Part shown: in pieces, positions 27,842 to 64,000 of the stretch
Position numbering within the stretch: the first letter of the stretch is position 1
Layout: the number at the start of each line of letters is the position of its first letter
NCBI GenBank assembly: GCA_904063045.1
Contig: CAJFCJ010000016.1
Span: 972,556-1,036,555 of the forward strand
From: Dimorphilus gyrociliatus
Taxonomy: Eukaryota; Animalia; Annelida
Direction of reading: 5' to 3'
DNA: 64,000 nt
Translations under genes and position numbers: made by a program
The notes under the pieces: generated by a model
Seen by the model: only the letters and a program-made list of their open reading frames with translations
Told to the model about the DNA's origin: nothing
Database searches by the model: none

Positions 27842-27913
27842 AGGTTCCACCGAGATTTGAACTCGGATCGTTGGATTCAAAGTCCAAAGTGCTAACCGTT
27901 ACACCATGGAACC
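27842..27913 (-). tRNA. tRNA-Gln-TTG: tRNA-Gln (anticodon TTG)
   Basis: Same 72-nt body as the CTG genes with anticodon loop CTTTGAA; T5 terminator about 17 nt downstream. Confidence 0.97.
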
Positions 27914-28699: not shown

Positions 28700-28771
28700 A
28701 GGTTCCACCGAGATTTGAACTCGGATCGTTGGATTCAAAGTCCAAAGTGCTAACCGTTACACCATGGAACC
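28700..28771 (-). tRNA. tRNA-Gln-TTG: tRNA-Gln (anticodon TTG)
   Basis: Matches the 27842 gene; T5 terminator downstream. Confidence 0.97.
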
Positions 28772-43498: not shown

Positions 43499-44572
43499 AT
43501 GAGAACATTTTACAGATGGACAACTGCAATTGTTGTAGTTGTTTGTCAGATGGTAGACATTTTAATATACTGTTAATCTCTTTTAATAGTCTTTTTTTTC
43601 TCTCTTTTTTTTTGTTAGGCATTTGCACACGGTCTACGCTGTCAAAAATGCTTCGATTGCCTAAATGAAAAGTACGAAATTGAAGAATGTTTACCCAACT
43701 ATACCTGCTCTTATCAATCTAAAAGTTGTGTTTTCACTATTTCATTCCGTATTTAGCCTATGATTTTTACTTAGATATTTTCAGTGTATTATTAAGATTA
43801 GATAAACAATCTAGGCTATTGCGTACAATATTACTATCTTTCTATATAAGCATAGAATTTCCCTACAGTTGTTGAAGGGATGGAAAGGGTTACTAAAATG
43901 TGCGCACCACCCTACGAAACGATTGAGAATAATTGCAAAATTGATAGAGAATACGGTACATTGACGACAACTTGTACTTGTTCCACAAACGACGAATGTA
44001 ATAGACATGCTATTCCTAATTTCATTGACAAACTATCCGGTAAGTTAGGTTTCGTGTATTAAAAATCCTTTTTATAGTTAGCCTCTTCTTCTACTACTAC
44101 AACTACTACTACTGCTTTTTAGCTGTTTCCTGCTGGCAATGCGACTCGAGAAGAGAATCTTGGTGTGGCAAGAAATTTCTCGCACCATCCGGAAGTATTG
44201 ATCAATTTATTTGCAAAACAAACTTTTCCTGCGCAATAATAGTAAAAAATTACAAGTCGAAAGGTTCGCCTTATTACTTATAGATTTTCAAATAGTTCAA
44301 ACAAATAAATACGTTAACGATTGCTTTTGTCAAATGCAGACGAGTACTATCAACGATACTGCTACAATTCATTAGCGTTTAGGACTGGTTGCGCTACACC
44401 TTACCCTGGGATGACTAAAGATTTATGCCTGTGCAAATCGACAAAATGCAATACGGATAAACCGAAACAACGAAGCCCGTATATTCCATATTGGAAAAAA
44501 GATATCAGTGGAGCGAAAATAGTGGATTATTCTGTCTTTCCGCTGTTAGCAGTACTGCTACTGACGAGTTGA
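43499..44572 (+). CDS. Ly6/uPAR (quiver/sleepless-like) protein with two three-finger domains, probably GPI-anchored
   Basis: Signal exon MRTFYRWTTAIVVVVCQM; LRCQKCFDC..; TCTCSTNDECN; VSCWQCDSRRESWCG..; CLCKSTKCN; hydrophobic tail VFPLLAVLLLTS. Confidence 0.75.
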
Positions 44573-47500
44573 CGAGGGGGGGGGGATTTGTGCGTTGAAG
44601 TATTTCTGTTTGTTTGTTCGCCGTTGGTGCAGAAACAAAAATGGGATAAAAGCACGAGAATCTTAGGAAGTTCACTTTTCTCTCTAATTGAAAAATAAAA
44701 GAGTAAAATTAGAATAATTAATTAATTTAATCATTAAAGAAAGATTACACAAAAGAGAAACTAGACACAATGATAGAAATGAATTCTAATCTAATAGTAA
44801 AGTATACAAATTGTTTTTTATCCATTCAAAGCTTTTGCCATTGTTTGAAAAAGAAAGAAAAAAAGAAAAGTGGTAAAATACAAGATAATTCAATAATTCC
44901 TCTAGTTAATTACCTCTTTTTTGTCTATTGTTTCAAAATAATAATAATACATTCTTCAATATTCCGATATATTCTTCGAATAGACGAATGAATGAATGAA
45001 TGCTTGAATAGCTTACAAAACATCGATGGAATAATTACGGTTGACAATACTGTTGAGCGGAATCTGTCAACTAGCAAAGGTTACGTAAATATTTCTACTT
45101 CCTCATTCACCGCTCACATAACAAACTGATTTACCCTTTTAATATACGCTCTATTGATCTCAACTTCAATTTTATAACTTGTCCTCTTATAGAGGTCATC
45201 TTTTAATATACATTGCATTTAGCAATTATTCCCTCATCTCATTTTCTTTCCTCCACTCCTAATATACAATTTGGTCATTTTGTATTTTAATAGTGAAATC
45301 TGTGGCGATTGCAGGTAGAGAGTATTAATCTATTTTGGGAGTAGGAGTCTTTGAATAAATTAATTTTTCATGTAGAAAACAAAATCTTGCATGACTATCT
45401 TTCAATTGCAGAAAAGATGATGATACTCGAAGGTTAAATGATAAATATCAGCAATCTGTTCAAAAGTTCTGTCACTTTGACATTCATTCAAAGTGAATGT
45501 TCCAAGAAAATTTCTTGTACATAAGTAAGAGGAAGCGTATTCAGGCAAAAACACCTTGTACCAATTCTTATTCTATTTAGATAGTTTAACTATTGTTATT
45601 CAAAACACTGTGAAATGTTTACACTGAATACAAATTTTACAACATTGACGATAAAATTTAATGATACTATTGACTACTACGAAAAAGCCATTTGTGGTAA
45701 ATTAGTAAATTTACGTATGCAATCGTAATTTTCATCAAAATTCATAAATATAAACAAACGAACAAACAGCTAATAGACTGGTACTTTTCCTATAAAATCG
45801 TATTATTGTATGGAGAATAGGAATTGTTTTTTTTTTACATATGCTTTTAGACACTTGATTTAAGACAAACTGAATTCAAGCATAAAGAAACTGCAAAATT
45901 CAAGAAAGTTTCTTGCAGAAATTATTCAAGTTTTGTTGCTGTGAGACTGGAACCAAAACTGTTTCTTACTACTTCTCCGCTATCTTTTTTCCCTACTTAA
46001 TTAACAAACACAAACTTATCAGCTATAGATAATATTATATAATGCCAATGTGGGAACATGAAATTAGTAAACTTTAAAAGCACAGATAATCAAACTAAAA
46101 ATGTGTGTGAGAAAGTTCTACAAACATGTTAAAAAGAGATAAGAATATGTAGTAATAAAAATTCTGTAGGACTGTACACCATATTCATAAGAGTGACAGA
46201 TATATAGGCATATGTATAAAAATCAGTTTAAAATTTGAGATGAAATAATTGAATTCTGTAAAAGTATTTAATAACAGCATTATAGTATTAGTCTATGTAC
46301 TGAATTTCAAAGATCTATCTTAATTAATAACAGAGTTGGTTCTACCCTGACAAATATATTAATATAGGCTTTTATGTAAGAAAGACCATGTAAATTTTGA
46401 TGGCTCCATAACTCTGGAACTCTAACAGATAATTGAATTCTGTAAAAAGATTTGGAATGAGTATATCGATATTAGTTTGTGTACAAAATTTGAAAGCTCT
46501 ATGATTATTAATAAGAAATTTAGTTTTTTTGTGACAAATATTTTAAGGTATGCTACAGAGTTTAAATATAACATTCATAACAATCCATATCTCAGCAACT
46601 ACTTAGCCGATTGTGATGAAATTTGAAGTGAAATTAATGACAGAATGAGACTAAATTAAATTACAATCAATTGAAACTGTAAAGTTAATTGAAATAAAAG
46701 TATTAATAATTTTTTAAAAAAATATTTTATTTAAAAAAGAAAAAGTATAGAAATTAGAAGAAAAGAAATCTATATCTAAAATTAAAAGCATATACAGGGA
46801 AAAAACTATTATTATCTTCTATATAATTGTTTAAGAAATTTTAAAAGACTGTTTCTGTTTTCTATTCTCAAAACCCACTGAATCTAAGTTGAGGGTTGAT
46901 TTTAACCTGCAGTTTGGACTTGAAATATTTTTGAAAATTTATCAACTTTTTTCAGTTGAAATTTTTCCAAGTCCAGTGCCTCATTGAGGGTAAATTTTCA
47001 AAATTGTCGGATTGCTTTCAAACTTGAATCCAAGCTTGCCCCTACATTGGAAAGATAGAAAAAAATATTTTCAATTTTGTATCAGAACTCTGAAAATTTT
47101 TGATTTTCAAAGCTCAGCCACTCTTGAACCATAAGAGCTATATGGACTATGTAGCATATTGATGAAAAGCTCTGTTTGTGCTCTTTCACCTCCAGCTGAT
47201 TTGAAACATCTAGGGTGACTCATAACAAAACAGATTTGGGACATTTTTACCACAGCACTGATTTTTACCCAATATTGTTGGAATGACTGATATTAAAGTT
47301 ATCATTATGAGTATAAAAATTTTTGAAAAATTCTCATAAGATGTTTTGCACATATCAAAGTCTTCATCACTTGTACTTTTACAGTCATACTTAATGTTAC
47401 AACAATGTCTCTTAGATAGGAATTTTTTTCACATGACAATTTCAAGTTTACAGGTGCAAGATTCTAATAATTCCCCACAATGTTTCACATCTTTTGAATA

Positions 47501-48877
47501 AAATACTTCAAATATTGTCAATTATCATCAAATTTTCATACTAAAATTGTATATAAATCAATTAGAAATTTTATAAAAATGATTTATAATTAATGTTCAT
47601 TCACTTGACCTAATCTATATTAATAACAAGATGCTTTTTTTATCAAATCAGCTTCAACACAGGTTCAGAAAAGAAAAAATAGAGATAAAGTGTTAAAAAT
47701 ACAATTCATGTCATATATTTCACATGTGTTCAAATTTAACTAGTAGCAGTGTATAATCAATGTCCTTTATAAATTTTAATGAAATGCATCTTTAAATCAT
47801 TAAAAAGCAGAGCTTTTATTTTTGTACATGTTAATTTATCTCCTAAAATATAAATTTCATTTCCAGATTTACCAGTAACATCATAGCTTATGGTGAAGGG
47901 TGTATTTGCATTTCTATTAACAACAGTTAGGACAGCATGTTAACTGACCATTCAGAGCATTAGGTGTTTTATAATATTCATCATACCCAGAGTTAGCTTT
48001 TCAGATTTTTTTTTTAAAGTTAAGCTGTCTAAGATCTGTACTATGGTTGTCTTGTTGAATGCATTTGTTATTGGTGCGCATTTCAGTTTGATATAGATGC
48101 TGTCTAAAAAACTGTACACATATATTCATCACCTTTTCTCTACAATAGACAAGTAGTATTCAACCAGTATTGTACTGTTTGGATAGCACTGATAGAGATA
48201 AGCTGAATCAATTAATTATTAATATTAAAGTAGAATACTTTAGTATGTTTAACCTAGGAAATATTAATCTAGATGGTTGCCAAGTATCGTTGACCTACCA
48301 TGGTTTTGTCTTCCCCTTTTAATGCAAAGACTCATCAGGGTCAATTCAGAGGATAGCATAACCTAAGAACTATCTTGAAGGGGAGGAGAGGATCAATTCT
48401 ACAATTGTATCCTTCCCTGCAGTAAGCTTTTTGGTTATAAGCCTAATCATAATTTGTTATATGTATGTAACCCTGTATAATTATGTGTAGGTGTATGTCT
48501 GATTGTGTATATATATATCAACCATTGAAGTTGATTTTTGTAATAGTTGTCAAAAAGTTGACATTTGTTTTTTGTAATTTTTCCTTTTTTTCCTTTTAGG
48601 ATTATGAAGATGATTTTGGTCATATAGATAGTTGTATTTTGATGCCTAATTTTTTATAATTTGTGAGGTTATATATGGTATTCATAAGAACTTTTGTTTT
48701 TATCAATGAATGCATGTGTGTATGTTTGTGTGTGAATATGTTTTTTATTTGTTTTGAATGAATAAAAGTTGATGTTTTTTAATTTTTGATTGAATTTGTG
48801 ATGATCAGATGTTAAGTTTAACTTGTACTGTTCCTCAAAACCCCTTGATTCTTCTTACTTGTGATTAGGTTTTATAT

Positions 48878-51800
48878 GGGGGCAACAGAAAACGTCCACA
48901 ACAGAAAATGTCCACAATTGACAGAAAACGTCCACAGATGGACAGAAAACGTCCACAACAGAAAACGTCCACAAATGGACAGAAAACGTCCACAAATGGA
49001 CAGAAAACGTCCACAAATGAACAGTAAATGTCCACATAGTATTATAAAAATAATTAAATAAGAATAGAGATGATGAAATGAATTAATATATTTTTCTTAA
49101 TTGATTAAATACTAATGATCTGAGAAAATGAAAACCATGAAATTGCAAGTAAAAAAGTTTATTTAAGAACATAATTTTTCAAATGACTTGAACATTTTTG
49201 ATATTTTTAATACTGTTGAATCAATACTGCACATAGTTAATAATATAAAGCAGAACACATCTCAACAAGTTGACTTGCTGTGATGTCACCAACTTTGAAG
49301 TTTTCCCAAATGGAAAACAGTTCCTTTTGAATTTCTGTGTAGACTTTTTTTTGCATTCTCAATATCTTCTTCTCACTTAATAATTTTTCATAGACAGATA
49401 TTAAGTCAGCCTCTCTCTTTAGTTCATCTATAATTGTGTAAAATGATGAGTTTATTCCCATGTTTTTATTGAGTCTATTATGGAATCCTTCCAAGTCATT
49501 ATTAGTGCAGATTGATTGGTTAAACACAGACCAAGTTTCTGGAGGCCAAAAGCTATTTTTTATCCAATTATCCTCCACATATTCTAATAAATCTCCAAGC
49601 TTATTTCTTTCAGCCAGCTCACTTTTTATTTTGTAAAATTGATTTGCAATCAAAGTATGAGGAAGGTAGGGCAAAGCCATAATCATTTTCATTGATTGCC
49701 ATTCTCCTTCTCTCTTTTTAAATTCTGGGCTGTAACCCAGATCCTAAAAGTAGAATAATATACTTGGATTAAATTTTTACATTTATTAGTATTATTTCTA
49801 ACCTGAATTTTTCTAAAAATGGCTTGTGACCAATGAAAACAACAACCAACCATTGTAACATCTGGCCATGTATCTCTGATACTTTTCCAAATGGCCTTCT
49901 CATAGTCCAAAACAATTTTTTGAACAGAGATGTCACCAGTTAATTCATTTACAGCCTAAATACACAAACTATCATTGATTTAAGTATTTAAAAGTATAAC
50001 TTACCTTGAAAAGTAATTTATAAGCTTTTTTCTTTTTTGAAGTTAAGAATGAAAAAAAATCAATGGCACCTGCTTCAACTCTCCATTTTTCTTTAAGAAT
50101 CCATGTATTGAAAACATTTGAACAAATGGATCCTTGGCAATTTTAAAAGTACCATCCACATACCATATTTTAGCCTTACTCAAAAGATTTAACTGATGGT
50201 CAGTTGCAAATACTAATATTCTTTGATTATTTAAATAAATATCTTTCTTTAGAAATCCCAATGGTATAAAAGTCAAATCAAGTTGAAAGTTGACATCATC
50301 AGGCTCAGCTGGTCTATTTTTTCACCTGTTATAGTTGGCTACTTCTTTGCAGTTGTGTAAATTCCCAAATGGATATTTTAAAAGAGTGTCTTCCCTAATC
50401 CTTTTTCCAGATGATTTATTATCACTAAGGCACTTCTCTTTGATATCTTTTCTAATTATAATCTGCTTTTCTGCATTTTTCAATGGAGAATGATTGTGTT
50501 TCATTTTACCAATTACAAAATCACTTCCTTTTTGGTTAATACTTGCAGAACACTTTCTATTTTTGTTACGAACTGAGCAAGTCCAAATTGTAGCTGTTTT
50601 TCTTTTCATTTTGATGTTAAAAGTATATCCTTTGTGGATGAGAAGATCTTTTCCTTTTTGACTGCCATTTTGTAAAATTTTGAAATGTAAATCATCAGTA
50701 CAATTATCTCTTTGACTAGTATTACTTTCAAATGAATCCTCTCGAAAATCTTGAACTTCTGTAGTTGATGTATCCACTGTGGTTACTTCAATTTCATTGT
50801 TGTATGTAATTTCATTGTCATTAATCACATTTCCAGTTTCCAATGGACAGTCAACAAAACCCTCTGAACTACTAAAAGAGAAAGACAACCTCAGCTCTTC
50901 TGTAGGTTCAATGAATTTCTTTTCTTTTTCATTATCAATTCTTGTTAGCAACACAATACAGTTTCTGTTTGATATTTGATAACACATCAAACATAATGGC
51001 AAAGTGCTGGTTGCATCTGAAAAAAAATTAATAACTGACAAAATCAAACTTTGGATATTTCATACCTTTAAAACACTTAATATGACAGTTTTTAAAGCAA
51101 AGACAACATTTGCCTTTGATTTGGTTTTCAATGAATTCATCTTGACATATATAACATGTATTATCCATGTTTTTAAACTTGGGATAGTTTTCTAGAAAAC
51201 TTGGAAAATAATTTATATTAACAAAATACCAGAAATTAGCAATTATCTATAGTATATACACTATTCAATAAGAGAAATCAAACAGTCAATTTTATTGACA
51301 AATCATGCTTTGTAATTAAAGGTTTGTACAATAGTCAAAAAAAAAATTTAAATACACCACATTAGGCAAAAAAGGTAGTATAAGTTTATGTTAAATAAAT
51401 CATTGATTGCTTTTGAACATATACTCCATTTTAACCTTAAAAAAACACTTTTTATTAAAATTGCTTCTTACCTCTGCTGAGTGAAAATAGAAAAGGAAGT
51501 TGATCTTTTCTATTTTCACAGCAGAAGATTTCCAACAATACCTGTTTTTGCTGGGGATCATAAATTTTTTTATTTTATCAAAAGAGTGAATTAAAAATCT
51601 TTTTACTACTATGAAGAGATATCTAAAAGCTTTTTATCACTTTGTAAATATTTTGTTTTTTTGTGGGTGTTTTCTGTCCCTTTGTGGACATTTTCTGTCC
51701 CTTTGTGGATGTTTTCTGTCTCTTTGTGGATGTTTTCTGTCTCTTTGTGGACGTTTTCTGTCAGGGTTAGTTTAACTATCAAAGTCACCTTTTTTTGAAA

Positions 51801-51979
51801 ATATAATTAATTATACATATAAAATTAACACTTTTCTATAAAGTTTTCAAAAGAAAAAGGTTTTTTTTTTGATTTTTTCACCTATTTTTTCATCGTTTTA
51901 ATTTTGTGGACATTTTCTGTCTTTTGTGGACATTTTCTGTTGTGGACGTTTTCTGTTGTGGACGTTTTCTGTCTGAACC
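48878..51979 (-). mobile_element. Mutator-like (MULE) DNA transposon, full-length but mutated
   Basis: Inverted arrays of CAGAAAACGTCCACA at both ends, GG..CC termini, flanking GTTTTATAT / GTTTATATT (shared TTTATAT), internal FLYWCH-MULE transposase. Confidence 0.9.
49237..51047 (-). pseudogene. FLYWCH + MULE DDE transposase with two introns, a nonsense codon and frameshifts
   Basis: FLYWCH LLIHKGYTF..WTCS..CSA..HNH; catalytic YVDGTF, DYEKAI, CCFHWSQA and TNNDLEGFHNRLN; in-frame TGA at 50322-50324; poly-T frameshift near 50052. Confidence 0.88.
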
Positions 51980-52119
51980 GTTTATATTCATTATTAATTA
52001 TTATATTCTCACTATATTACCATTAAATCTACCTTAGGACACTGTTTTACAAGTTATTTACATGAATTATTATAATATTTTATGAAAATATAGTAATAAT
52101 ACTTTTAAATCTTTTTAAT

Positions 52120-52536
52120 ACTTGGTATTGGAAAGATGCAGCTTTGGCCTCTTTTTAAAACTATTAAACAAGTTTTTAACATATTTGGTTGGAATATTGT
52201 CAAATGCTTGCTGTGTTTCCCTTCATGGATCATCTACATTTGTGCACATATGTTTACCAACCCTTCCTTTTAGGTATGACCATAAATTTTCAATAGGATT
52301 GAGGTCAGGACTCTGGGCTGACCAGTCTATGAAGTGCTGATGTTCTTTTCATTTAGATACCTTAAGGTAGTCCTAGATGTATGGCATGGAGCACCATCCG
52401 GCTTGAATACATGGTCCTTATGGTAATTCTCTAGAAGAGATTTATCAAGAATTTCTTGATATTTCTCCAAATTTAAATTACTTTTATATAAATGTATACC
52501 TCTGCTGCCATCTCTTTTTGTAAAACCCCAGATATT
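52120..52536 (-). mobile_element. Tc1/mariner transposase relic
   Basis: The minus strand encodes NIWG..NLNLEKYQEILD..FKPDGAPCHTS..DWSAQSPDLNPIENLW, with frameshifts and stops. Confidence 0.85.
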
Positions 52537-53792
52537 TAGAAATCATTTGCCTCTTTAAAAGCTTTTATAGTATATTTTGCCTTATTGTAGTTTGTTGTTT
52601 TGTAATTGTAGGAATTTCTGGTTCGTCACAACTGTAATTGTGTGTATAATGTATAGATAGTAAAACAACTATAAAAACTAAATTATATGTCTTTAATAAA
52701 AAACATCAGGGACTTGTAATCAAAAATAATAAAAAACTATTTATTATGCAAAACATTAAAAAAGATGATAAAATGATAAAAGGGTTAAAAAAATTTAATA
52801 ATCTTTAATAAACAGCCATAATAACAAATTTTAAATTACTAACTTGAGTTTATTTGGGCAGAATCTTAGTTTGCCAGCTGGTTTAAATCATGGTTATTTT
52901 GATTATCAACCAATAAAATTTTTATGACAAAGCATTAAACAGTGACTATCTAATTTATACAAGTTATTTCTGATTTTTTAAACAGGATTATTAATTCTGA
53001 CAAAAATAATGGAATTTTTGGTTTATGTTCAGCTTTGTTATAGTCATTCCACTCTGATATTTTCTTTTAGAAACTTTTGAAAAAGTGGAATTAAAGACTT
53101 TACTCAGCTTCAACAAAAAATGGATGTGCTAGATTCATTAACATTTTTAGGCCAAGTTAAATGTAAAACTTGCAACAATGAACAAATTTTCTCATCTTAA
53201 GAAATGGAAATATTCAAGTAATATTTCATTGGCAGTTTAAAGTTTGTTTTCAATCAAGGCTTTTACCTATTACGTTTTTGCCTTAAATTGATGTTTTCCG
53301 TTTGAGCTCTTTTGCTGATTATCTAATTTTTAAAGAGCAATTACAGACTATTTGACAAAGACAAGAAGGAAGATGACAAACTGGTATCACTCTAAACTAC
53401 AATGATCAATGCAAATCAAACAATAGAACCCATAGATCTGATTATTGAAGGGAGGAACTCTTTGATGAAGGCCTTCTGGCCAAATGTCTCACACCTTAGG
53501 ACTTCCAAAAATTTTTTTGTTTATAGGGTTAAATCAAAGCAGCCATATTTATCAACCAATGAGTTCAAGAAAGTTTCATATCATCATAGGTCAACTTGAC
53601 TAGGCTCAGAGTTTAAGTAGAGGATTTATCTTGTACAAAATATTTTATTTAGGCATTTACTCTTAAAAGGATAGATACAGAAAATTTTACACATGTGTTT
53701 TACATGGTTACTTATGCAGATTTGAAAGAAGATAGGATACAGATTTCACACTCTGTCTGCAAAAGTTAATTCAGTTGAATATCAAAAATAGC

Positions 53793-54025
53793 TGTACTTT
53801 GTTCTATTGTAATTGTAGGAAGTCCTAGCTCGTCACTATCAAATTCGTCCTCTCCAATCATGTACCAATGTGCCAAAGTACTGGTCCAAATAGAACCTTT
53901 CAAGTTCGTCCACAAGTAGTCTTAATAAATGTAATTCTAGTAAAAATTAACCAACAAACACCAGTATTTCATTCAAAGAATTTGTATTTGAGTAAATGAG
54001 TTTCTAGTTCTAAACAAGCAAGTTT
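53793..54025. repeat. dispersed repeat of about 233 bp, copy 1
   Basis: Nearly collinear with 58243-58475 (roughly a dozen substitutions by eye); a short related stretch lies near 52600-52630. Confidence 0.9.
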
Positions 54026-55061
54026 GAACAACCAGCTGATGGTTATAAAACTGAACTGACTACTGTTAAATTCTAAGGGTTTATATACTTTTCCAATAGT
54101 TCACAGTTCACAGATAAAAATATTCACACAAACAAATGTAACAATTTGGATAAAGGGAAAGTTCAAATATACTTCCATGTTTGTTACTTTTTCTTTATCT
54201 TGGAGAACTTTTGCTCCCTATTTTAGTAGGTCAAAAAGTTGCCTAAGATGTAACAATTATTAATAGAAGTTGGATTGATTCCAAAACACAAAAATAGGAA
54301 AAGGTCAACTTGATGCCGTTTTAATATACAACAAATTATTAATAATAATTGTTTGTGTAAGATAATATGTTTCTGTGTAAAGGACTGGTAGCATAAAAGT
54401 ATTAAACTTAATTAACTAATATAGTATTGTGCATACAATACTGTTGAAAAGTGACAATAATCTAAAAACTTCAAATATAAATAGAATAGTGGAAGATATA
54501 ATTAATATTCATTAAATATGATGTGTATAATAATTAGGGTTAACATCTAAGTTATAAAATACTTTTACAACTTAGTTTAAATAGTGTATGTTGTAGTTTT
54601 AGGCGTGTAGAGTACTCTATAATACTCTTTCAATATTGCTTTCCATCGATGAAAGAAATGTAACAATTTGGGTGTATTGTGTGAATTTGTGAGCCTGGTT
54701 ATAAGCTTATGTGTTTAGTACCTATGAACTGCCTAAATGTGTACATATAAGTTTCATAAAAAAATAGAGTTCAAGCATGTAAAATATAACCAAAGCTGTA
54801 CAACAATAAGGCTTTTTCTTTTGTTATGATTGTGTTCATGTTTACTCTTTATGAAAATATTTCATTTTTGTTGAATAATAACTGGACATTGAACATTCAT
54901 ATTGTACAACTTTGGTTATCTTTTACATGCTTGAACTCTATTATTTTATGCAACTTATACATGTACATCTTAAAACCTACACAAGAAAATGCTATAACAT
55001 TGGCCAAACATAAGTCTGATTAGTCAGCTTGAAGGCTCATCTTTAATTACCAATAAAGGTT

Positions 55062-55195
55062 TGGCCAAGTTATAATTTAATTAACTTGCCTAGGGTGTGG
55101 CCAAGTTATAATTTAATTAACTTGCCTAGGGTGTGGCCAAGTTATAATTTAATTAACTTGCCTAGGGTGTGGCCAAGTTATAATTCAATTAACCT
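55062..55195. repeat. 36-bp palindromic minisatellite, about 3.7 copies
   Basis: TGGCCAAGTTATAATTTAATTAACTTGCCTAGGGTG starts at 55062, 55098, 55134 and 55170 (last copy partial); internal inverted repeat CAAGTTA..TAACTTG. Confidence 0.92.
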
Positions 55196-56501
55196 TCCTA
55201 AATGTTGAACCTTGTAACATCCTCTTACTAAAGATAAATATGAATTACACATTTTTTTCAGTTTCATTTTCATGCAATAAGTTTTCCTCTATATTACAAG
55301 TAATGTAACTTCATAATGATTACAACTGTCTTTAACCCTGTTATTGAGAGTACAACTCAGAGCAGCTTTTACAATGGGATCATCATTGATCACATCTGAT
55401 AAACTAATGAAACAATATCTGTCACTCAAACTTTTGCATGAAGAAGGCTTATCATCTAACATTTCTGTAATATTAAGCAAAGTTAAATAAATATTTGGTT
55501 TTTACATAGTAAATATCATCTTTACAGATATGATGACAAAGTGAATTTCTTCAGTCCTAAACTTTTCTGCACATTTTTTGCAAAACACTCTTTGAGATTC
55601 TAAATGAAAAATGAAAAACATGAATAATTTAATAAAAACATATAAACAGACAGACCTTTGAGCATTCTTCATGTACATAATGTTGGCACTCACTGCATTT
55701 CATCTTACTCTGTCTACCATAAAATCATTTATTACAGTTAATACAAACAGGTGCCCTTAGTAAATTTCTAATTCATTTCTCTTTTAATAGCATTACATAA
55801 TTCAGAGAAAACTGGTAAAAACATTACAATACATATATCTTTCTTCAAAAATATTAATATATTTTTTTTATAAATGAAGTAAATAGCAAAAAGAAATATT
55901 TTTGATTCAAAGTATCAATAATTATACCTGGTATATCCTTAGCCATGCATAGGATGTTTTTTCCCAGGGACGTCTTTTTCAAACCGCCATAGCTCCTAAA
56001 TGGCTGGGCAGATTTGGTTCAAATTTTGTACAGAGATTCGTTTGTATTGGGACTAACTCTGTACCAAATTTTATAGAGATTGGAGCAGTTTGAAAATTTC
56101 GATAATTTTATTGGTCGACTCACAAGTGGAGGACACTTATATTCGACCTGCAGGTACATCAAGCCTGTCAATAATCAGTCTGGTGGCAATTGTACTGTGG
56201 CTTTTCAACTCACTTGAAAAAGGGTCAATAGACCTGAAGTATTGTGAGTGTTTTTATTTTGGTGAATTGTTACATCTGTTAAATACAGGTTCTCTTCACC
56301 CTTGTTGAGAATATGTAAGTGGTTTTGTTGGAGATACAATTACAGCTTAGGCTGGGGAATTGCTACTCAGGATAGCAACTCCTCATTAGCTACACCAAAA
56401 CTTAGCCAAATCTTGGTTACAAGTGTGTGTACACTTTTGTTAGCTATGTGGGCTCTGACTTATACATAATATCAAAGTTTGTTGATCACTACCTGGTCTA
56501 A

Positions 56502-57008
56502 TTGGCTAAGAGCACTACTAGTTATGTCAAAAATACCCAGCATTGTATTAATAAATTGTCCAAAATCCAGAACTGGGAACACAGAAAAATCTATACAGCA
56601 GATGTGGAAGCCTTGTACCCAAGTATCAACCCTGAATGGGGTATAAGAGCTGTTAGAGAATTTATGCTAACACATTACCATGAGGATATACCAGATGAAT
56701 TAATTTTGGATCTACTCTGAATTTGTCTCACCAACAATGACTTTACATTTAGAAACCACAGGTTCCTACAAATCAAGGGCACAGCCATGGGAGCCCCTTT
56801 TAGCCCAGCCTATGCCAACATTGTGCTACACATTTGGGAATGCAAATTGGTCTCCAGGCACTCTGAAAACATTGAATATTATGGGAGATATATTGATGAT
56901 ATCATTGTTGTCTCTAAAGCTGATAAAGATATTAGTGAATTTAAACTGGAACTCAATGGAAAAAACCCTGATATATACAGAGCCCTGACCAAGGGAACCC
57001 CTCATTGA
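56502..57008 (+). mobile_element. Penelope-like element reverse transcriptase fragment
   Basis: TADVEALYPSI, GTAMGAPFSPAYANI and GRYIDD motifs in one frame, interrupted by a single TGA at 56718-56720; truncated shortly after YIDD. Confidence 0.85.
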
Positions 57009-57461
57009 AACCTCTGTGGAGCCCTAACTTAAAGAGAACTCCCATACAACACCTAGAAGCAAATACTGTACCCTGACCAAGGAGAACCCCTACCATAACC
57101 AATACAAAGCTGGTAACATTGATTAACTAACCAGTTCCTAAAACTGACAACAGTTCTGTGAGTGGCCTAACCAAACCTAAACCAAACCCTAACCTAACGA
57201 AATATAAGTACTTCTATATTTGCACCAGTCTAATTCCTATAAAATAGAAGTCTTTCTAATGTACCCCTATATCTAAAGTCTAAGTATTGATATATCATTG
57301 TATCTAAGTGCACACACAATGCCAAACATTAAACATTCATATTAAATTGTATTGAATAAGGTCTACCATTTTATAAAAAGATTTTTATACTGAATTGTTG
57401 TGTACAGTAAACCCAGTTGATTTTAAAACTAAACCTACAAATTGAATTTTTCTGAAATAAT

Positions 57462-60400
57462 ATGGCAAAAGTAAGAATATTTTTTTTTAATTTATTAAAT
57501 TATATTTTTTGGATTTTTTTAGGCAATTATATAGTTGAGATTTCAATAGCAATTTAGTAAAAATGCTGGAATATATGTTAAGATAATATTTGAAAGTATC
57601 TGTTGTCAGCCATTGCAACTAGACTTGGCAAATTACCAAATTTAATGTTACCTGTTTTATTTGCTTACAAATCTTAGTGAAAGGTTGTTTATCATTCTAT
57701 TCTACATTTTTCATCACCAAACACCTATTTAATTCTAAGTATATTTTTAATAATAATATTTCTCAATGATAATTATTGTCTAGTAAACTACAAACTCAAC
57801 CCTTCACTATGACAACAATATATATATTCTTATTTCATCTTTTAAAGATACTAGATTATAGTATGGTAAAAAAAGATCCTTTTGAGAAAATGTTGATCTA
57901 ATTTGAGAACTAATAGTAATATAGTGAGAATATTATAATTAAAAATAAATGTATGTTTATAAAAATGTATTAAAAATGTAAAAAGCTAAGAATGTTATAC
58001 AACGTTTTAAAGTTACTCAAATACAAACAAAATATGGTGAGACACTAAGAATTTTTTTGAATAGATTATTTGCAATCTTCTGTGAGAGGACAGCAGATTT
58101 AATCATTCATTTCTCTTTAAATAGCATCACATAGTTCAGAGCAAGTGGGTAAAATATTGCAGTACATTTTTCATTAAATTTATTACTAATTATGCCCAGT
58201 ACATCTTTATCCATGCCTTGGACATTTTTTCCCATCTATGGGTGTACTTTGTTCTATTGTAATTGTAGGAAGTCCTAGCTCGTTGCTATAAAATTTGTCC
58301 TCTCCAATCATTTACCAATGTGCCAAAGTACTAGTCCAAATAGAACCATTCAAGTTCGTCCACAAGTAGTCTAAATAAATGTAATTCCAGTAAAAATTAA
58401 CCAACAAACACCAGTATTTCATTCAAAGAATATGTATTTGAGTAAATGAGTTTCTAGTTCTAAACAAGCAAGTTTAGATCCCATCTATGGGATATCATTC
58501 CCAGGCATGTTTTTTCCCTAGGATGGTTTTTCTCAATCATAACCATTACATTAGTGATCATTAAAACATTTCTGTGTAGGCTTCAAATCTTTTTTTTCCC
58601 AATAAAATCTGTCAATAAATTTATATTTTACAGCACATTAGAAATAACTTACTTAACTATCATTATGAAAATATATTAGAATGTCTAAATGGTGATGAAA
58701 AATTTCAAACATTTCTACTACAGGAAGATGTGATTAAAGACAATTGTTTATCTGAGCAATTAAATTTTGAAAAGCTTTTTAAGGAACATATTCAATATGT
58801 GCCAACATCTAAATTCCTTTTAATTTTACTTAAAATGAACACAGTAAAATGTCAAAGACTTTCGGAATTGATTAACAATACTTGGACTATTTTAATGAGA
58901 GAGAGAAAGAATATTTTATTAAAGGATTTGGAAACAATTCCAAAGTTTCCATTTTTAAAAGAAAATCCTTCTCAGATTAATTTCAGTAAAATTTTCACAC
59001 CCATCCAATTGGTATCATCAAAAAGTAATCTGGTTGTTGATGAAAATTTTGATGATATTAAATCCTTTCAAAAGATTTTAATTGATGAGGAAAATAAAAG
59101 AATTTTGATTAGAGGAGATGCTGGTATGGGTAAAACTTATCATGCAATGAAAATTTTACATTCATGGGTTCATGATGACACATTTTTGGACAATTGTCTT
59201 CTTTTGTATATCAAACTTGGAGCTGTTCAAAGAACTGCATCTAAAGAATCTTTGGTTGATGAACTGTTTACAAATAATTTTAAAAGAGACTCCTGCATTA
59301 CCAAAGAACTCTTTCAGTACTTTTTTGAGCAGACAGAATGCAAAGAAAAGATGATTCTTCTTTTGGATGGGGCTGATGAACTGAAATATGAAGATTCAAT
59401 ATTTAATGATATTGTAAAAAAGTGTAATTTTACAATTTATCCAGTAATTGTTTGGGCAAGAAATTGGAAAATTAGACATGTTAGTGATACCTATGATTTT
59501 GTATTTGACATCAATGGATTCAATGAAAGACAATTGAAAATTTATTTTGAAAAATTTTTTAATGAAGACAATTTACCTGATTTAAAACTACCATTTTACC
59601 ATAATAAAAGCCATAAGAAATTAACCACTAATTGTTTCCACCATGATGGAAAAGTTATAAAGAAATCTGATATTCTTTTTCAAATGTTAAAAACAGAAAA
59701 CAAAGAAGTTTTTAACATTTGTAATAGTCCTTTAATAGCCTGTTTAGTAGCTGGTATTTGGGAAGAAAGAGATACAAATATTATAGGTACTAGATATTCT
59801 ATTTTTGATCAATCCATACAGATTCTATTAACTAAGGCTGGCATTGATTCTAAAAGTAATGATTATACGAAAATTTTAGAATATTGTTCAAAACTGGCTT
59901 TTGAAAATTTACTTTACAATAAAGAAATATCAATAAATGAAATTGTAAAAAAGTCAGATTATATTGGTGGATTATTGATTCCAGTTAAGAAAAAATCATC
60001 TATGACGCAATTTAAAGATTTTACATTTATTCATATTTTCTTCCAAGAATATCTAACTGCAAGATATATCATAAATTTATACCAAGATAGCAAGAAAAAT
60101 GAATCAATGATTCAATCACTAAAAACATATTTTGACAAGTTGGAAAATCTATTTTTATTGAAAAATGTTTTCAGTTTTCTTCAAGAAATAAATTATAAAG
60201 TATTTTCTCAAATTATTGAAGAGAATGAAAATATTCTTATGGTATTGGAAACTGATCAAAGAATTATTGATATAATAAATAGAAGGCATTCAAATTTAAT
60301 TGAACTTGAGTCAATATCATTACCAACAACTATTATTAATATTATATTTAATTCCTATAAAAGAAATATCAAAGAAATCAATTTCAAATTTGTTAAGATA

Positions 60401-63400
60401 AATCTACCAAATTTTATTGAGATCTGTACCAGCCAATTGGAAAATATATTAGAAATTTTTAAAATCAATGGAGGTATTGAAGAATTATTAGAAATTGAAA
60501 TAGTAAAAAAGTTAATGACAAAAATGCAAAAATTAAGAGTTTTAAGTATAACTAATGTTTTCTTCAATGGATGTTTAGAATTGTCATCCTTTATACAATC
60601 AACTACAATAGAAGATTTAACATTAGAAAATTGTAATTTACAAAAATGTTCACCTAGATTTTTGAATATGAAATTCAAATGTCTTTATTATTTCAATATT
60701 TCTGAAAATCAATTTGAAGGTAAGGAGTAATTTTTCAAATATGACTATTTTAAAACAATCAATTTTTTAGATAATCAGCCCTTGGATTATATTCTGATAA
60801 ATAACAGAGATATTATCTCATTAAATATTTCAAAATGTTTTAATTCAGGAAAACAATCAGAAAATCTAATAAATCTTCTTCAACAATATCCAAATTTATC
60901 ATTTCTTAATTTTTCAGACAATATCATTCCAAATAATATCTGTAATACAATATTTACAAATCAAAATAACCAAATCAGAGGTTTACAAATTAACAATTGT
61001 AACACAGAACTTGATTCAAAAGACATTATTACATTTTTGGAATTCAATAAAGAAATAGAAATTTTGGAGTTAAAAGGAAATGTTTTAAAAGAAAATGATG
61101 AAAACTCTTTTCTAACAGCTTTATTATCATTGCAAATTGTAAAACATCTGAAATTGCCATTAATAGATCATAAAGAAATGATTTGGAAAAAAGAAAAATT
61201 GTCTCAAAATTGTAAAAGTTTAATAAATCTGAAATTGCTGGATTTGGGAGAAAATTCTTTAGAACATGAATGTATAACTGACTTTTTTCAACAAGTTTTA
61301 CAAAGTTCAAAATATTTATATACTCTTTTTTTAAGAAAGTCTAAAATTTCTTCCAAAGTTATAAACATGATGTCAAATTCTTATAGACAGGTAACTTCAA
61401 CAACAGAAAATCTTCAAAAGCATAAACTTTATATGATATTTAATTCATGTGAATTTGACTTAAAATTGGATGATATTACTAAATTTTTCAATGGTATGTT
61501 CTACTTCATTGACTTAGATATATCTCATACAAAGGCACAATTGGTTATTGATAATCTCTCCAGTCTAAAATCTCTTGAGCAAATTGAAAATTTAATTTTA
61601 GCAAAGTGTCAATTAACTTCAAACGATCTAGCCAAAATTGGAAAGTGTATTCATATGTTCACATCTATAAAAAAGTTAGATATATCATACAATCCAATTG
61701 ATTCATTTGCTCTTTTAAATTTTTTCAAAACGTTCACTATAAATAATCACAAATCAATTAGACAACTCTACATACACAAGTGTAATTTTCATTTGAAACA
61801 TATTTTACAAATTTGTCAAGCTATTCAAAGTTTATACAACTTGGATATTTTAAATTCATTATCCAATCCTCAAACTGTCAATAAATTAAATACTTCAGAA
61901 TTGGACAAAATACTTAATTCAAATCTATTCAATTTGTCTTTTATTCAAAAACTTTTAAATGATTTCTCAGATATATTAGATACAAGATTATTAAAAATTT
62001 CAAACAGTTACAACTTTCCAATAAATAACATACTAAATATAATTAAAGAAAATCAATCAATAGTTATTGACACATTGGAAATAACATCACAATTAAATAT
62101 AACTCAAATATCACATCTAAAAGAAGCTATTGAAAAAAACATTTCTTTTCAAACATTACAAGCTTTGCTCATTGATGATAAAAACATATCAGAGCATGTT
62201 TTAGAATATAATGACAACAATGTTAAAGACAAATGTTCAGATTTAGTAACATTTCTTTTAGAACATATTAAAACAAATTGCACAAACTTGACCTTACTTA
62301 GAGTAAGCAATTGTGAAATTCAACAGGTTTGGTCATACTATTGGAGATGCAATTGGTAAACAAACTCTACTGACTGAACTATTTTTAAGTGACAATCCAA
62401 TTGGAACAGAAGTTGGAAAAAGTATTTTTGAAAATATTAAAAGAAATTGCACAAAGTTGACAGCACTTGTTTAAGCAATTGTGGATTTCAATCTACAATT
62501 GGTGATGTTGTTGGAGATGCAATTGGTAAACAAACTCTACTGATAAAATTATTTTTAAATGACAATCCAATTGGAACTGAAGTTGGAAAAAGTATTTTTG
62601 AAAATATTAAAAGAAATTGTACAAAGTTGACAGTCATTGATTTCCAAAATTGTGGATTTAAATCAGGAATTGGTGATGTTGTTGGAAATGCAATTGGTAA
62701 ACAAACTCTACTAACTAGGCTATCTTTAAGGGACAATCCAATTGGAACTGAAGTTGGAAAAAGTATTTTTGAAAATATTAAAACAAATTGTACAAAGTTG
62801 ACAGATATTTATTTCCAAAATTGTGGATTTAAATCAGGAATTGGTGATGTTGTTGGAGATGCAATTGGTAAACAAAGTCAACTGATAAAATTATTTTTAA
62901 ATGACAATCCAATTGGAACTGAAGTTGGAAAAAGTATTTTTGAAAATATTAAAACAAATTGTACAAAGTTGACAGTCATTGATTTCCACAATTGTGGATT
63001 TAAATCAGGAATTGGTGATGTTGTTGGAAATGCAATTGGTAAACAAACTCTACTAACTGGGCTATCTTTAATGGACAATCCAATTGGAACTGAAGTTGGA
63101 AAAAGTATTTTTGAAAATATTAAAACAAATTGTACAAAGTTGACAGTCATTTATTTCAAAAATTGTGGATTTAAATCAGGAATTGGTGATGTTGTTGGAG
63201 ATGCAATTGGTAAACAAACTCTACTAACTGAGCTATCTTTAAGGGACAATCCAATTGGAACTGAAGTTGGAAAAAGTATTTTTGAAAATATTAAAACAAA
63301 TTGTACAAAGTTGACAGTCATTGATTTCCAAAATTGTGGATTTAAATCAGGAATTGGTGATGTTGTTGGAGATGCAATTGGTAAACAAACTCTACTAACT

Positions 63401-64000
63401 GAGCTATCTTTAAGGGACAATCCAATTGGAACAGAAGTTGGAAAAAGTATTTTTGAAAATATTAAAACAAATTGTACAAAGTTGACAGTCATTGATTTCC
63501 AAAATTGTGGATTTAAATCAGGAATTGGTGATGTTGTTGGAGATGCAATTGGTAAACAAACTCTACTAACTGAGCTATCTTTAAGGGACAATCCAATTGG
63601 AACGAAGTTGGAAAAAGTATTTTTGAAAATATTAAAACAAATTGCACTGAAGTTGAAAGCATTAATTTCAATAATTGTGGATTTGAATCAGGAATTGGTG
63701 ATGTTGTTGGAGATGCAATTGGTAAACAAACTCTACTGACTGAACTATTTTTAAGTGACAATCCAATTGGAACAGAAGTTGGAAAAAGTATTTTGAAAAT
63801 ATTAAAACAAATTGTACAAAGTTGACAGTCATTTATTTCCAAAATTGTGGATTTAAATCAGGAATTGGTGATGTTGTTGGAGATGCAATTGGTAAACAAA
63901 CTCTACTAACTGAACTATTTTTAAGTGACAATCCAATTGGAACTGAAGTTGGAAAAAGTATTTTTGAAAATATTAAAAGAAATTGCACAAAGTTGACAGC
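57462..64000 (+). CDS. NLR-type NACHT-LRR protein 2 (runs off the window; frameshifts in LRR array)
   Basis: Possible micro-exon ATG GCA AAA at 57462-57470; large exon from 58634; Walker A GDAGMGKT, Walker B LLLDGADE, FIHIFFQEYLTARYI; 51-nt intron 60720-60770 joins ORFs 58730 and 60782 in frame; RI-like LRRs. The first exon is tentative. Confidence 0.85.
58243..58478. mobile_element. dispersed repeat copy 2, inserted with a 13-bp target-site duplication
   Basis: TCCCATCTATGGG at 58230-58242 and 58479-58491 brackets the copy. Confidence 0.8.
62351..64000 (+). repeat. 171-bp coding tandem array (57-aa A/B LRR pair), at least 9.6 units
   Basis: The AATTGGTAAACAAA anchor recurs at 62351, 62521, 62692, 62863, 63034, 63205, 63376, 63547, 63717 and 63887. 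Confidence 0.97.

Follow-up and report, generated by a model that had tools for sequence, protein, structure and literature searches.

Dimorphilus gyrociliatus is cited as an annelid that has lost 5-methylcytosine (5mC) (PMC11292947, PMC12153100, PMC13012060), a conclusion built on the adult methylome together with a genome-wide CpG observed/expected ratio (o/e) of 0.9. The only published methylome, obtained from adults by WGBS, gave an mCG of 0.16%, below the non-conversion rate (PMC11292947). Why, then, should part of this genome carry a deep and sharply bounded deficit of CpG? We addressed this question in a stretch of 64,000 nucleotides (the window, to which all plain coordinates refer) at the end of the 1.04-Mb contig C16. 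The initial annotation had described an abrupt, roughly tenfold CpG cliff there and had proposed a sharply bounded, long-lived, methylated and heterochromatin-like domain.

CpG o/e fell 9.5-fold, from 1.14 in 1-45799 to 0.12 in 45800-64000 (binomial p = 3e-101, local C and G content taken into account). All 2-kb bins in 1-46000 lay between 0.85 and 1.48 and all bins in 46001-64000 between 0.02 and 0.17, and no 500-bp window left of the cliff had three or fewer CpGs. Maximum likelihood placed the change point at 45800 (2-lnL support interval 45760-46010), bearing out both the abruptness of the cliff and the sharp boundary; the hand counts behind the original description (33 CG in 44041-45060, 3 in 46021-47040 and 1 in 59041-60000) were exact. 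Following the last left-hand ORFs, which include a Ly6-like C-terminal exon (44321-44572), a 1.1-kb shoulder of intermediate CpG content (44651-45800; o/e 0.73, 19 CpGs) was weakly supported, a three-segment model gaining only 2.3 lnL. The annotation further had the depletion continuing up to the end of the window. All right-hand bins are indeed low, but the window ends where the contig ends, so the true extent of the domain is not indicated.

The loss was specific to CpG. About 373 CpGs are missing from 45800-64000, where about 305 TpG and 257 CpA were gained, and across the cliff TpG o/e rose from 0.97 to 1.30 and CpA o/e from 1.01 to 1.29. TpA o/e did not rise (0.81 left, 0.74 right), and among the 16 dinucleotides CpG alone fell, to 0.11 of its left-hand value. 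GC content went from 0.32 to 0.285. Because GpC o/e was nearly constant (0.95 left, 0.90 right) while TpG and CpA were gained, base composition does not account for the CpG drop.

The two sides also differed in content. The left compartment (1-44650; CpG o/e 1.16) is CpG-replete and gene-rich, and the only repeats in the left 45.8 kb are four tRNA-Gln genes; the right side is mostly multi-copy, in keeping with the reported fall in gene density and accumulation of transposable element (TE) relics at the cliff. A gene-body-methylation footprint was absent from the gene-rich side in this one 46-kb sample (bins 0.85-1.48), which makes "the reverse of typical invertebrate gene-body methylation" a fair description.

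The depleted domain (45801-64000; 45 CpGs in 18.2 kb, o/e 0.12, GC 0.285) forms the terminal 18.2 kb of the contig. Within it lie a segmentally duplicated block, a transposon of MULE type, a multi-copy LTR and an NLR gene that was duplicated recently. Next to its edge lies a relic with two small exons (45269-45768, + strand), about 72% identical to copies on contigs C120, C48 and C64 that sit in depleted DNA; its first splice donor is AT in the window copy and GT, in CpG context, in another copy (L007). A collinear duplicate of C12:2720183-2722684 occupies 46009-48476 (77-100% identical, mostly 96%; CpG o/e 0.10), of which the first ~150 nt (46009-46156) are part of a dispersed repeat found in 20 or more copies at 82-89%. 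The MULE-type DNA transposon (48870-51972, - strand) is bounded by terminal inverted arrays of a 14-nt motif, CAGAAAACGTCCAC, and its broken ORFs include a FLYWCH zinc finger and a weak match to a MULE domain. It has at least eight genome copies at 89-99% identity, and its remaining CpGs (o/e 0.18) are mostly in the end motifs. An LTR of about 953 bp (53785-54747, + strand; CpG o/e 0.30), present in the genome in 30 or more copies that are 96-98% identical, is followed by a degenerate interior (54748-58237; o/e 0.10) that includes a 36-nt tandem repeat (55058-55200) and in which there was no ORF longer than 83 aa and no Pfam match. A 238-nt LTR fragment (58238-58475, + strand) is 95.7% identical to 53793-54025, and CpG sites account for three of the ten differing positions (one CG/TG, one CA/TG double).

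Depletion extended to every sequence class of the domain, with CpG o/e of 0-0.22 in spacers, 0.10 in the duplicate, 0.18 in the MULE, 0.30 in the LTR, 0.10 in the interior and 0.03-0.09 in the NLR gene, which counts against a cause other than methylation. The spacers 48477-48869 and 51973-53784, for which no copy was detected among the best candidates scored, were as depleted as the repeats. Old spacers were the most depleted (0-0.13), so that any halt of the depleting process would have been recent. All depleted sequence analysed was multi-copy or adjoined multi-copy DNA, which fits a domain-wide mark and repeat-by-repeat targeting alike.

The NLR genes on either side of the cliff allowed coding DNA to be compared. 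NLR1 (20764-26226, + strand), a single ORF of 1820 aa with NACHT and LRR domains, is a CpG-rich gene (o/e about 1.4) and, at the DNA level, single-copy. NLR2, on the same strand in the depleted domain, has a copy at 97% identity elsewhere, and its family has more than 90 matches in the assembly. Its NACHT-domain exon (58634-60719; likely acceptor AG at 58632-58633) lies in a frame open from a stop near 58619; an in-frame ATG is lacking upstream of 58730, and the portion of the gene on the contig has no start codon. A 51-nt GT..AG intron (60720-60770), which contains the first apparent in-frame stop, separates it from a middle exon (60771-62340) of about 525 aa with degenerate LRR-like repeats, followed by an array (62341-64000) in which a 171-nt unit (57 aa, two LRRs) recurs 9.7 times, the units being 93% alike; the array has one CpG and is cut by the contig end. 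At least four one-base frameshifts occur, near 62330, 62470, 63600 and 63770; the placeable ones, near 63600 and 63770, fall within a stretch with A5/T5 runs, and the frameshifts in the array are possibly assembly errors. The view that one NLR lives inside the domain calls for caution: its exons are long and open and its intron is clean, but there are also the frameshifts and the missing start codon.

That coding DNA is affected was clear: the NACHT region of NLR1 has 64 CG and the matching NLR2 stretch 2. CGN codons specify 33 of 81 arginines in NLR1 and none of 33 in NLR2, CpGs across codon boundaries number 118 and 1, respectively, and arginine makes up 4.5% of NLR1 compared to 1.4-2.9% of NLR2. 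The NLR2 coding sequence has adapted to CpG loss, and sequencing error cannot yield such a codon pattern.

At all seven further loci with which boundary sequence is shared, distributed over six contigs, CpG o/e was 0.13-0.33 and TpG/CpA o/e 1.14-1.35, compared to a CpG o/e of 1.09 at the DNMT2 locus. As judged from these sequences, the depletion is that of a genome-wide compartment and is not specific to the window. When repeat pairs with 95% or higher identity were compared, the two copies differed by a transition at 5 of 42 CpG positions and at 12 of the 1018 remaining C/G positions (odds ratio 11, p = 3e-4); over all repeat pairs, transitions were found at 28-40% of CpG and 16-17% of other positions, and the commonest double-transition pair among copies was CA/TG. 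A polarised comparison gave two CpG losses and no gains (2/12 CpG vs 10/336 other, p = 0.06). The young-copy tests involve few events (5/42; 2/12) and non-independent copies. In the MULE end motif CpG was lost in 8 of 17 copies, every time by transition, and changes affected 8 of 34 CpG positions compared to 2 of 204 others (p = 3e-6). The pair L003/L005, 99.2% identical, had one CpG change among eight substitutions. This last pair apart, the comparisons, with small numbers and non-independent copies throughout, indicate a recent, CpG-specific hypermutability in young copies.

We then considered which enzymes could be responsible. DNMT1, on contig C5, has RFD, BAH and methylase domains at one locus, where a CXXC domain was absent; the alignment of its catalytic exon to mammalian DNMT1 is close, and motifs I, IV (PCQ), VI (ENV) and VIII are intact. 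Two SRA-domain loci were found. DNMT3 was not: the only PF00145 matches were DNMT1 and DNMT2, in agreement with PMC11292947, and a RID-like third C5-methyltransferase gene was likewise not found among them. As maintenance-only systems exist (10.1101/149385), DNMT3 is not strictly defining for methylated DNA. DNMT1 and UHRF1 transcripts are highest in early embryos and TET transcripts in adults (PMC11292947). TE islands of this genome are gene-free and closed in ATAC-seq (PMC7854359), the published observation on which a heterochromatin-like state of the domain would rest, and B compartments are TE-rich (bioRxiv 10.64898/2026.05.18.725834).

A compartment assumed to make up 5-25% of the genome would, by our computation, hold 0.5-3% of all CpGs, so that global mCG and CpG o/e are blind to it. 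Its full methylation in adults would give a global mCG of about 0.45-2.8%; the 0.16% measured implies no more than partial methylation of the compartment in adult tissue, unless reads from repeats had been thrown out.

We hypothesized that the window spans the border of an island, rich in repeats and poor in genes, in the D. gyrociliatus genome, and that DNA of this type occurs not only here but also at the ends of other contigs and on many small ones. Such DNA would have undergone long-term decay of CpG to TpG/CpA of the kind produced by germline 5mC deamination, while the gene-rich remainder would never have been under such a methylation load. CpG methylation would be limited to the repeat islands, where the retained DNMT1 (RFD, BAH and intact catalytic domain, without the autoinhibitory CXXC), together with an SRA-domain UHRF1-type reader but without DNMT3, would both write and propagate it. 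The germ line or early embryo would be its place of action, with little of it in adult tissue, which would be why the adult methylome and the genome-wide CpG o/e of 0.9 missed it. The footprint, its boundary, its recurrence at the seven other loci, the CpG-specific hypermutability of young copies and the enzyme set are observations; 5mC as the cause, DNMT1/UHRF1 as the agents and present-day activity are what we infer, and not with equal confidence. That the footprint was caused by 5mC, past or present, is very probable; the full statement, in which repeat-island CpG methylation by DNMT1 and a UHRF1-type reader is still active in the germ line or embryo, has about an even chance of being correct. 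More tentatively, and with somewhat less than an even chance, a CXXC-less DNMT1 and a UHRF1-type reader might constitute a DNMT3-independent system in which repeat and NLR islands stay methylated through the germ line or early embryo solely by maintenance and local spreading, the mark being erased in adult tissue. Such a system would be a metazoan counterpart of Cryptococcus Dnmt5 and would give an animal methylome of transposon islands only, with no gene-body methylation.

The footprint may instead be a fossil: ancestral island methylation, for example with DNMT3, would since have been wholly lost, leaving a CpG deficit that mutation has so far not repaired. We regard this as doubtful, although it deserves serious weight. 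It accommodates the adult mCG of 0.16%, the absence of DNMT3 and the precedent for DNMT1 without 5mC (PMC11292947); the CpG-poor composition of young TE copies may be inherited by lineage, and L003 and L005 differ by only one CpG change in eight substitutions. Against this, among pairs with 95% or higher identity the frequency of differences is still 11-fold higher at CpG than at other C/G positions, the oldest spacers at 0-0.13 give no sign of recovery, and the catalytic motifs of DNMT1 are still intact. Gene-body footprints, expected in annelid ancestors, are moreover wholly erased on the left (0.85-1.48), which implies that island methylation outlasted gene-body methylation by a long time.

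An improbable alternative is that mutation or methylation is triggered by repeats copy by copy, through a RIP/MIP-like or small-RNA-guided process, the "domain" being a run of adjoining repeats. A left side without repeats, and the pairing of a single-copy, CpG-rich NLR1 with an NLR2 that has a 97% copy and is CpG-free, are what such a process would leave, but the two spacers in which no copy was detected among the best candidates scored are equally depleted, the TpA excess of classical RIP is missing (o/e 0.81 to 0.74) and a RID-like third C5-methyltransferase gene was not found. RIP is not known in animals, and guidance by small RNA would be a targeting route of DNMT1/UHRF1 island methylation and not a true rival to it.

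We give still less credence to an assembly artefact, in which unrelated pieces, or a contaminant from a methylated organism, were falsely joined at about 45.8 kb. The depleted part is the final 18 kb of the contig, this part begins at a dispersed repeat and includes a 96% duplicate of C12, and the terminal LRR array probably contains uncorrected one-base errors. The right side, however, has TE families in common, at 95-99% identity, with over 30 contigs of the assembly, including large ones such as C5 and C12, and the NLR family there has its more than 90 matches in the same assembly; a contaminant was excluded by this sharing of TE and NLR families with dozens of contigs. The only place for a false overlap is the high-identity duplicate at 46352-48207, and depletion starts 350-550 bp before it, at 45.8-46.0 kb, so that the cliff beside unique left sequence remains even with the far end misplaced; the compartment is present at the seven other loci regardless. 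A mis-join or contaminant at 45.8 kb is thus unlikely on the sequence relationships. Base composition, biased gene conversion or anti-CpG selection in mobile elements, suggested by the GC change from 0.32 to 0.285, has a negligible chance of being the cause, as o/e is already composition-corrected, CpG alone of 16 dinucleotides falls while TpG and CpA rise, the GC drop about equals the effect of losing 373 CpGs alone, and spacers, DNA transposon, LTR and host-type gene are all depleted.

Island methylation by DNMT1 and a UHRF1-type reader would have partial parallels elsewhere. Vertebrate genomes, under global germline methylation, have a CpG o/e of about 0.2-0.25. They share the fall in CpG, the rise in TpG/CpA and the loss of CGN codons, at a depth that is equalled or exceeded here (0.12), but in vertebrates depletion is the default and CpG islands the exceptions, whereas here depletion is the exception in a CpG-replete genome. 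CpG methylation targeted to TEs and heterochromatin occurs in some arthropods, the centipede Strigamia among them. TE methylation is also found in the annelid Owenia fusiformis (PMC11292947). These mosaic-methylome animals resemble D. gyrociliatus in CpG-specific decay over repeats, in gene-poor closed chromatin and in untouched neighbouring genes, but they methylate gene bodies, keep DNMT3 and reach a global mCG of 10-20%, whereas here there is no gene footprint and no DNMT3, and adult mCG is reported as nil. Fungal RIP likewise involves C-to-T/G-to-A transitions in duplicated DNA, spared single-copy genes and sharp borders, but its preferred change is CpA to TpA, so that TpA goes up; in the present DNA TpA falls, CpG alone is lost, and a RID-like gene was not found.

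In Cryptococcus neoformans, the maintenance enzyme Dnmt5 alone has kept CG methylation of transposon-rich repeats for millions of years since the de novo enzyme was lost (bioRxiv 10.1101/149385). Alike are the restriction of methylation or its footprint to TE-rich DNA, the lack of a de novo gene, a maintenance-type enzyme and the implied evolutionary persistence; the differences are that Cryptococcus is a fungus, that Dnmt5 is an SNF2-type enzyme and not DNMT1/UHRF1, and that 5mC was measured there whereas the evidence here is a mutational footprint. Tribolium castaneum also has DNMT1, lacks DNMT3 and has negligible 5mC, and Guynes et al. draw this parallel for the retention of DNMT1 without DNA methylation (PMC11292947). 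The Tribolium model predicts no CpG-decay compartment, whereas D. gyrociliatus has one, young repeats included.

This compartment, at a CpG o/e of 0.12, is depleted more deeply than mammalian DNA; it includes TE families with copies 95-99% identical, and young repeat copies have an 11-fold excess of CpG transitions. Either methylation survives in an unassayed stage, or island methylation long outlived gene-body methylation and DNMT3; both outcomes bear on how animals lose methylation, on why DNMT1/UHRF1 are retained in "unmethylated" species and on maintenance-only inheritance in Metazoa. The depleted DNA also houses a recently duplicating subfamily of NLR immune receptors, in which CpG decay would speed amino-acid change. 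D. gyrociliatus is cultured in the laboratory and has a 78-Mb genome.

CpG dinucleotides were depleted abruptly and severely across the right part of the window. When dinucleotide statistics were recomputed over the whole window, the observed/expected ratio for CpG (CpG o/e) was 0.85-1.48 in every 2-kb bin of positions 1-46000 and 0.02-0.17 in every bin of 46001-64000, with overall values of 1.14 left of the break and 0.12 to its right (binomial p = 3e-101 for the CpG share of the right part, given its local C and G content). The roughly tenfold cliff described at 45.8 kb by the initial annotation is thus real and strong; its hand counts of 33, 3 and 1 CG were reproduced exactly on recounting, and the contrast it drew between the NACHT regions of two NLR genes holds (64 CpGs in NLR1, left of the cliff, versus 2 in NLR2, to its right). 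A Poisson change-point model placed the break at 45800 (2-lnL support interval 45760-46010), with a weakly supported 1.1-kb shoulder at 44651-45800 (o/e 0.73). No 500-bp window of the left part held three or fewer CpGs, and the few right-part windows with at least five lay at both ends of a transposon and at one spot near 56 kb. The window covers C16:972556-1036555, and the depleted stretch forms the terminal 18.2 kb of contig C16 (1,036,555 bases) in the 77.9-Mb, 349-contig assembly, and the portion seen ends with the contig.

CpG was the only one of the 16 dinucleotides to collapse, to 0.11 of its left-hand value, while TpG rose 1.34-fold and CpA 1.28-fold, GpC stayed flat and TpA fell slightly. 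In counts, the right part had a deficit of about 373 CpGs and surpluses of about 305 TpGs and 257 CpAs. GC content fell from 0.32 to 0.285, a drop that the missing CpGs would roughly account for. Base composition, which had been named as a possible cause and a test for it specified, is therefore not the explanation, because the CpG loss is matched by TpG/CpA gain and by a GC fall of approximately the size expected from the lost CpGs. Such a pattern is the one left by C-to-T transitions affecting CpG on either strand.

All components of the depleted domain shared in the loss. About 200 bases of spacer open it, followed by a dispersed repeat of about 150 nt (46009-46156; at least 20 copies, 82-89% identity) which itself opens a 2.5-kb block collinear with, and mostly 96% identical to, C12:2720183-2722684. 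Next comes a MULE-type DNA transposon (48870-51972). Inverted arrays of a 14-nt motif lie at its termini, its broken minus-strand ORFs gave a FLYWCH finger and a weak match to a MULE domain, and it has at least eight genomic copies at 89-99% identity. An LTR of about 953 bp (53785-54747; at least 30 copies, 96-98% identity) precedes a degenerate interior, with a further LTR fragment of 238 nt at 58238-58475. CpG o/e was 0-0.22 in spacers, 0.10 in the duplicate, 0.18 in the MULE, 0.30 in the LTR, 0.10 in the interior and 0.03-0.09 in NLR2; retention was highest in the youngest families and lowest in anonymous spacers. Pfam searches of the LTR-element interior and the small ORFs of 45-58 kb returned nothing except the FLYWCH and weak MULE matches. 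The motif CAGAAAACGTCCAC, probably a transposase binding site, occurs in 17 copies at the transposon ends (48883-49039 and 51660-51983); these arrays hold most of the transposon's surviving CpGs, making its ends CpG-richer than its body. A 36-nt tandem repeat (55058-55200; four copies, 96% alike) lies within the degenerate interior. The only repeats of the left 45.8 kb, and the only hits of Rfam and tRNA scans of the window, were four tRNA-Gln genes at 5570-5643 (+), 14350-14423 (-), 27841-27914 (-) and 28699-28772 (-), two with anticodon CTG and two with TTG; a further tRNA-like fragment match was seen near 4868-4940.

The depletion extends into coding DNA. NLR2, searched one exon at a time, extends on the plus strand from about 58634 as far as the contig reaches and comprises a NACHT exon, a 51-nt GT..AG intron (60720-60770) that explains the first apparent stop, a middle part of about 525 amino acids and an LRR array (62341-64000) of 9.7 units of 171 nt, 93% alike and encoding LRR pairs; no start codon was found within the part present. 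Since the NLR1 and NLR2 proteins are only 23% identical, a directional nucleotide comparison was dropped in favor of codon statistics. None of 33 arginine codons in NLR2 was CGN, compared to 33 of 81 in NLR1; C|G codon junctions numbered 1 and 118, respectively, and arginine made up 1.4-2.9% of NLR2 versus 4.5% of NLR1. Sequencing or base-calling error is excluded as the source of the depletion, because a CGN-free NLR2 is the evolved state of an open reading frame. The LRR array carries four frame changes, all single-base shifts, of which those near 63600 and 63770 fall within a stretch with A5/T5 runs; they may reflect real decay or uncorrected PacBio errors in a tandem repeat at a contig end. 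NLR1 is single-copy at the DNA level, whereas NLR2 is matched at 97% along 4.75 kb of C105 and at 77% on C95, and small contigs carry many further relatives at 64-70%. The C105 copy has a frame change in its NACHT part, for which decay and assembly error are again the alternatives. Genome-wide, at least 90 NACHT matches to NLR2 were seen. Most of them lie on small contigs (C34-C305), and several contain in-frame stops. Expansion of the NLRs seems to be concentrated in the poorly assembled, repeat-rich portion of the assembly. NLR1 and its surroundings (20001-26000) had a CpG o/e of 1.39-1.48, well above 1 and unusually CpG-rich for DNA of 32-35% GC.

The CpG-depleted compartment is not local to C16. 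A query with the boundary sequence retrieved seven other loci, on C120, C51, C114, C80 (two), C48 and C64, all with CpG o/e of 0.13-0.33, TpG/CpA o/e of 1.14-1.35 and typically 0-3 CpGs per 500 bases (maximum 8), compared to an o/e of 1.09 and 8-23 CpGs per full 500-base bin at the locus of a DNMT2-type gene.

No description of such a compartment was found in the published record as searched. The genome paper reports a PacBio assembly of about 78 Mb in about 350 scaffolds, Mariner and MULE as the DNA transposons, an LTR element as the dominant TE, and gene-free TE islands closed by ATAC-seq (PMC7854359); it nowhere mentions CpG or methylation. Guynes et al. measured 0.16% mCG in adults, a level that did not reach the non-conversion rate, and a CpG o/e of 0.9 for the genome. 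They concluded that 5mC was secondarily lost, with the reservation that their data leave room for methylation at earlier stages (PMC11292947); negligible methylation is repeated in later papers (PMC12153100, PMC13012060). A 2026 preprint that covers A/B compartments is silent on CpG depletion (bioRxiv 10.64898/2026.05.18.725834), and a literature search on Dimorphilus and CpG found no report of a depleted compartment. From the measured densities (29.0 CpGs per kb on the left, 2.47 in the depleted part), a compartment that occupies 5-25% of the genome would contain 0.45-2.8% of all CpGs and give a genome o/e of 1.10-0.93; with so few CpGs in it, both published global figures are blind to it. 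By the same arithmetic, a compartment fully methylated in adults would give a global mCG of 0.45-2.8%. Set against the 0.16% measured, this means that in adults the compartment is no more than partly methylated, provided that repeat reads were retained.

We examined the genome for methylation machinery. Only two genes matched PF00145, a single-exon DNMT2-type gene on C7 and a DNMT1 on C5 that carries RFD, BAH and methylase domains and whose catalytic exon aligns closely with mammalian DNMT1 and retains motifs I, IV (PCQ), VI (ENV) and VIII intact. SRA (SAD_SRA) domains were found at two separate loci, C19:346924-347478 and C7:1365570-1366081, one of which is presumably UHRF1. No CXXC domain was found at the DNMT1 locus. 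In mammalian DNMT1, as DNMT1-DNA structures show, the CXXC domain is autoinhibitory and blocks de novo activity. It is likewise termed autoinhibitory by Guynes et al., who report for D. gyrociliatus a DNMT1 without CXXC, no DNMT3, UHRF1 present, and transcripts of DNMT1 and UHRF1 peaking in early embryos and those of TET in adults (PMC11292947). We propose that CpG methylation is confined to the repeat islands, where DNMT1, recruited by a UHRF1-type SRA protein, would copy it during replication; having lost CXXC, the enzyme could perhaps also methylate de novo or spread the mark to some extent, even though DNMT3 is missing. The mark would be present in the germ line or embryo and later erased, which fits the embryonic DNMT1/UHRF1 peak and the adult TET peak. 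The closest worked-out analogue is Cryptococcus, which lost its de novo enzyme and has kept its TEs methylated ever since through Dnmt5 alone (bioRxiv 10.1101/149385). The DNMT1 locus itself (L010/L011, C5:2893845-2898450) had an intermediate o/e of 0.59-0.71, below any 2-kb bin of the window's gene-rich part (at least 0.85) and below the DNMT2 locus.

The serious rival, which we consider rather unlikely although far from negligible, is that the depletion is a fossil footprint of extinct methylation, which the adult methylome and the precedent of Tribolium favor. Conservation of the enzyme speaks against it, as does an excess of CpG transitions in young repeat copies. Across 113 pairwise repeat-copy alignments (30.5 kb of columns from non-independent copies, coding LRR array excluded), 28-40% of C/G positions in CpG had a transition in the partner copy compared to 16-17% of other C/G, and CA/TG was the commonest double-transition pair (98, with at most 51 for any other). 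The excess persisted in the three alignments of at least 95% identity (5/42 CpG transitions versus 12/1018 others; odds ratio 11, Fisher p = 3e-4). A four-copy comparison polarized by an outgroup pair was suggestive, with two CpG losses and no gains (2/12 CpG lineage-sites versus 10/336, p = 0.06). Within the transposon end arrays, the CpG of CAGAAAACGTCCAC was lost in 8 of 17 copies, always by transition (5 TG, 3 CA), compared to 2 changes in 204 at other positions (p = 3e-6), a somewhat biased comparison as the search tolerated up to three mismatches. Of the 10 positions at which the two LTR pieces differed, 3 fall on CpG sites, again an enrichment. All tests were concordant, if small in numbers and drawn from non-independent copies: CpG hypermutability was active within the last few percent of divergence.

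Back-of-envelope estimates place this activity in a long history. Decay from an o/e of about 1.1 to 0.12 takes roughly 2.2 decay half-time units. For a CpG rate raised 10-15-fold, this corresponds to the time in which a site gains about 0.15-0.2 ordinary transitions, and the depleted state is therefore old. Old spacers nevertheless stand at an o/e of 0.13 or less with no sign of recovery, although A:T-to-G:C change at just 1.5% or so of the roughly 2400 TpG/CpA sites would restore 0.1; any halt of the process must therefore be recent, which weighs further against a fossil footprint.

Repeat methylation that continued at least until recently, the reading we prefer, may have been targeted repeat by repeat or set as a domain-wide mark. 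The sequence analyzed (the window and loci L001-L011) is compatible with either, although spacers in which no copy was detected among the best-scoring candidates of the copy search are as depleted as the repeats, which argues against repeat-by-repeat targeting. A false join is unlikely to have produced the cliff, as depletion starts 350-550 bp ahead of the sole high-identity duplicate. Contamination is excluded by repeat and gene families common to the rest of the assembly, and composition, biased gene conversion and RIP all fail on the dinucleotide pattern.

The initial annotation had read the domain as methylated and heterochromatin-like, with one NLR inside it. At the level of sequence, the evidence supports reading it as a repeat island that bears the footprint of methylation, the opposite of a gene-body pattern, and the domain may still be methylated today. 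This kind of signature is well known, and its setting is new within the literature searched: an animal deemed unmethylated, with no gene-body footprint and no DNMT3, a CpG o/e below mammalian values, and an NLR subfamily inside. The setting merits a direct test.

The domain has a sharp edge at the first repeat past the last gene, which hints at a border where two chromatin states meet. Relic exons at 45269-45768, compared with copies in depleted loci (about 72% identical), showed CpG-versus-TpG/CpA differences in both directions. This relic of two small exons belongs to a multi-copy family (copies at the extra loci L002:1471-1963, L007:1479-1837 and L008:1479-1837) and is flanked by splice signals, the first donor being lost in the window copy; by eye, the cysteine spacing of its peptide is reminiscent of PAN/apple modules. 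The last CpG-rich ORF left of the cliff (44321-44572, plus strand) is cysteine-rich with a hydrophobic, GPI-signal-like tail, and may be the C-terminal exon of a Ly6/uPAR-type protein.
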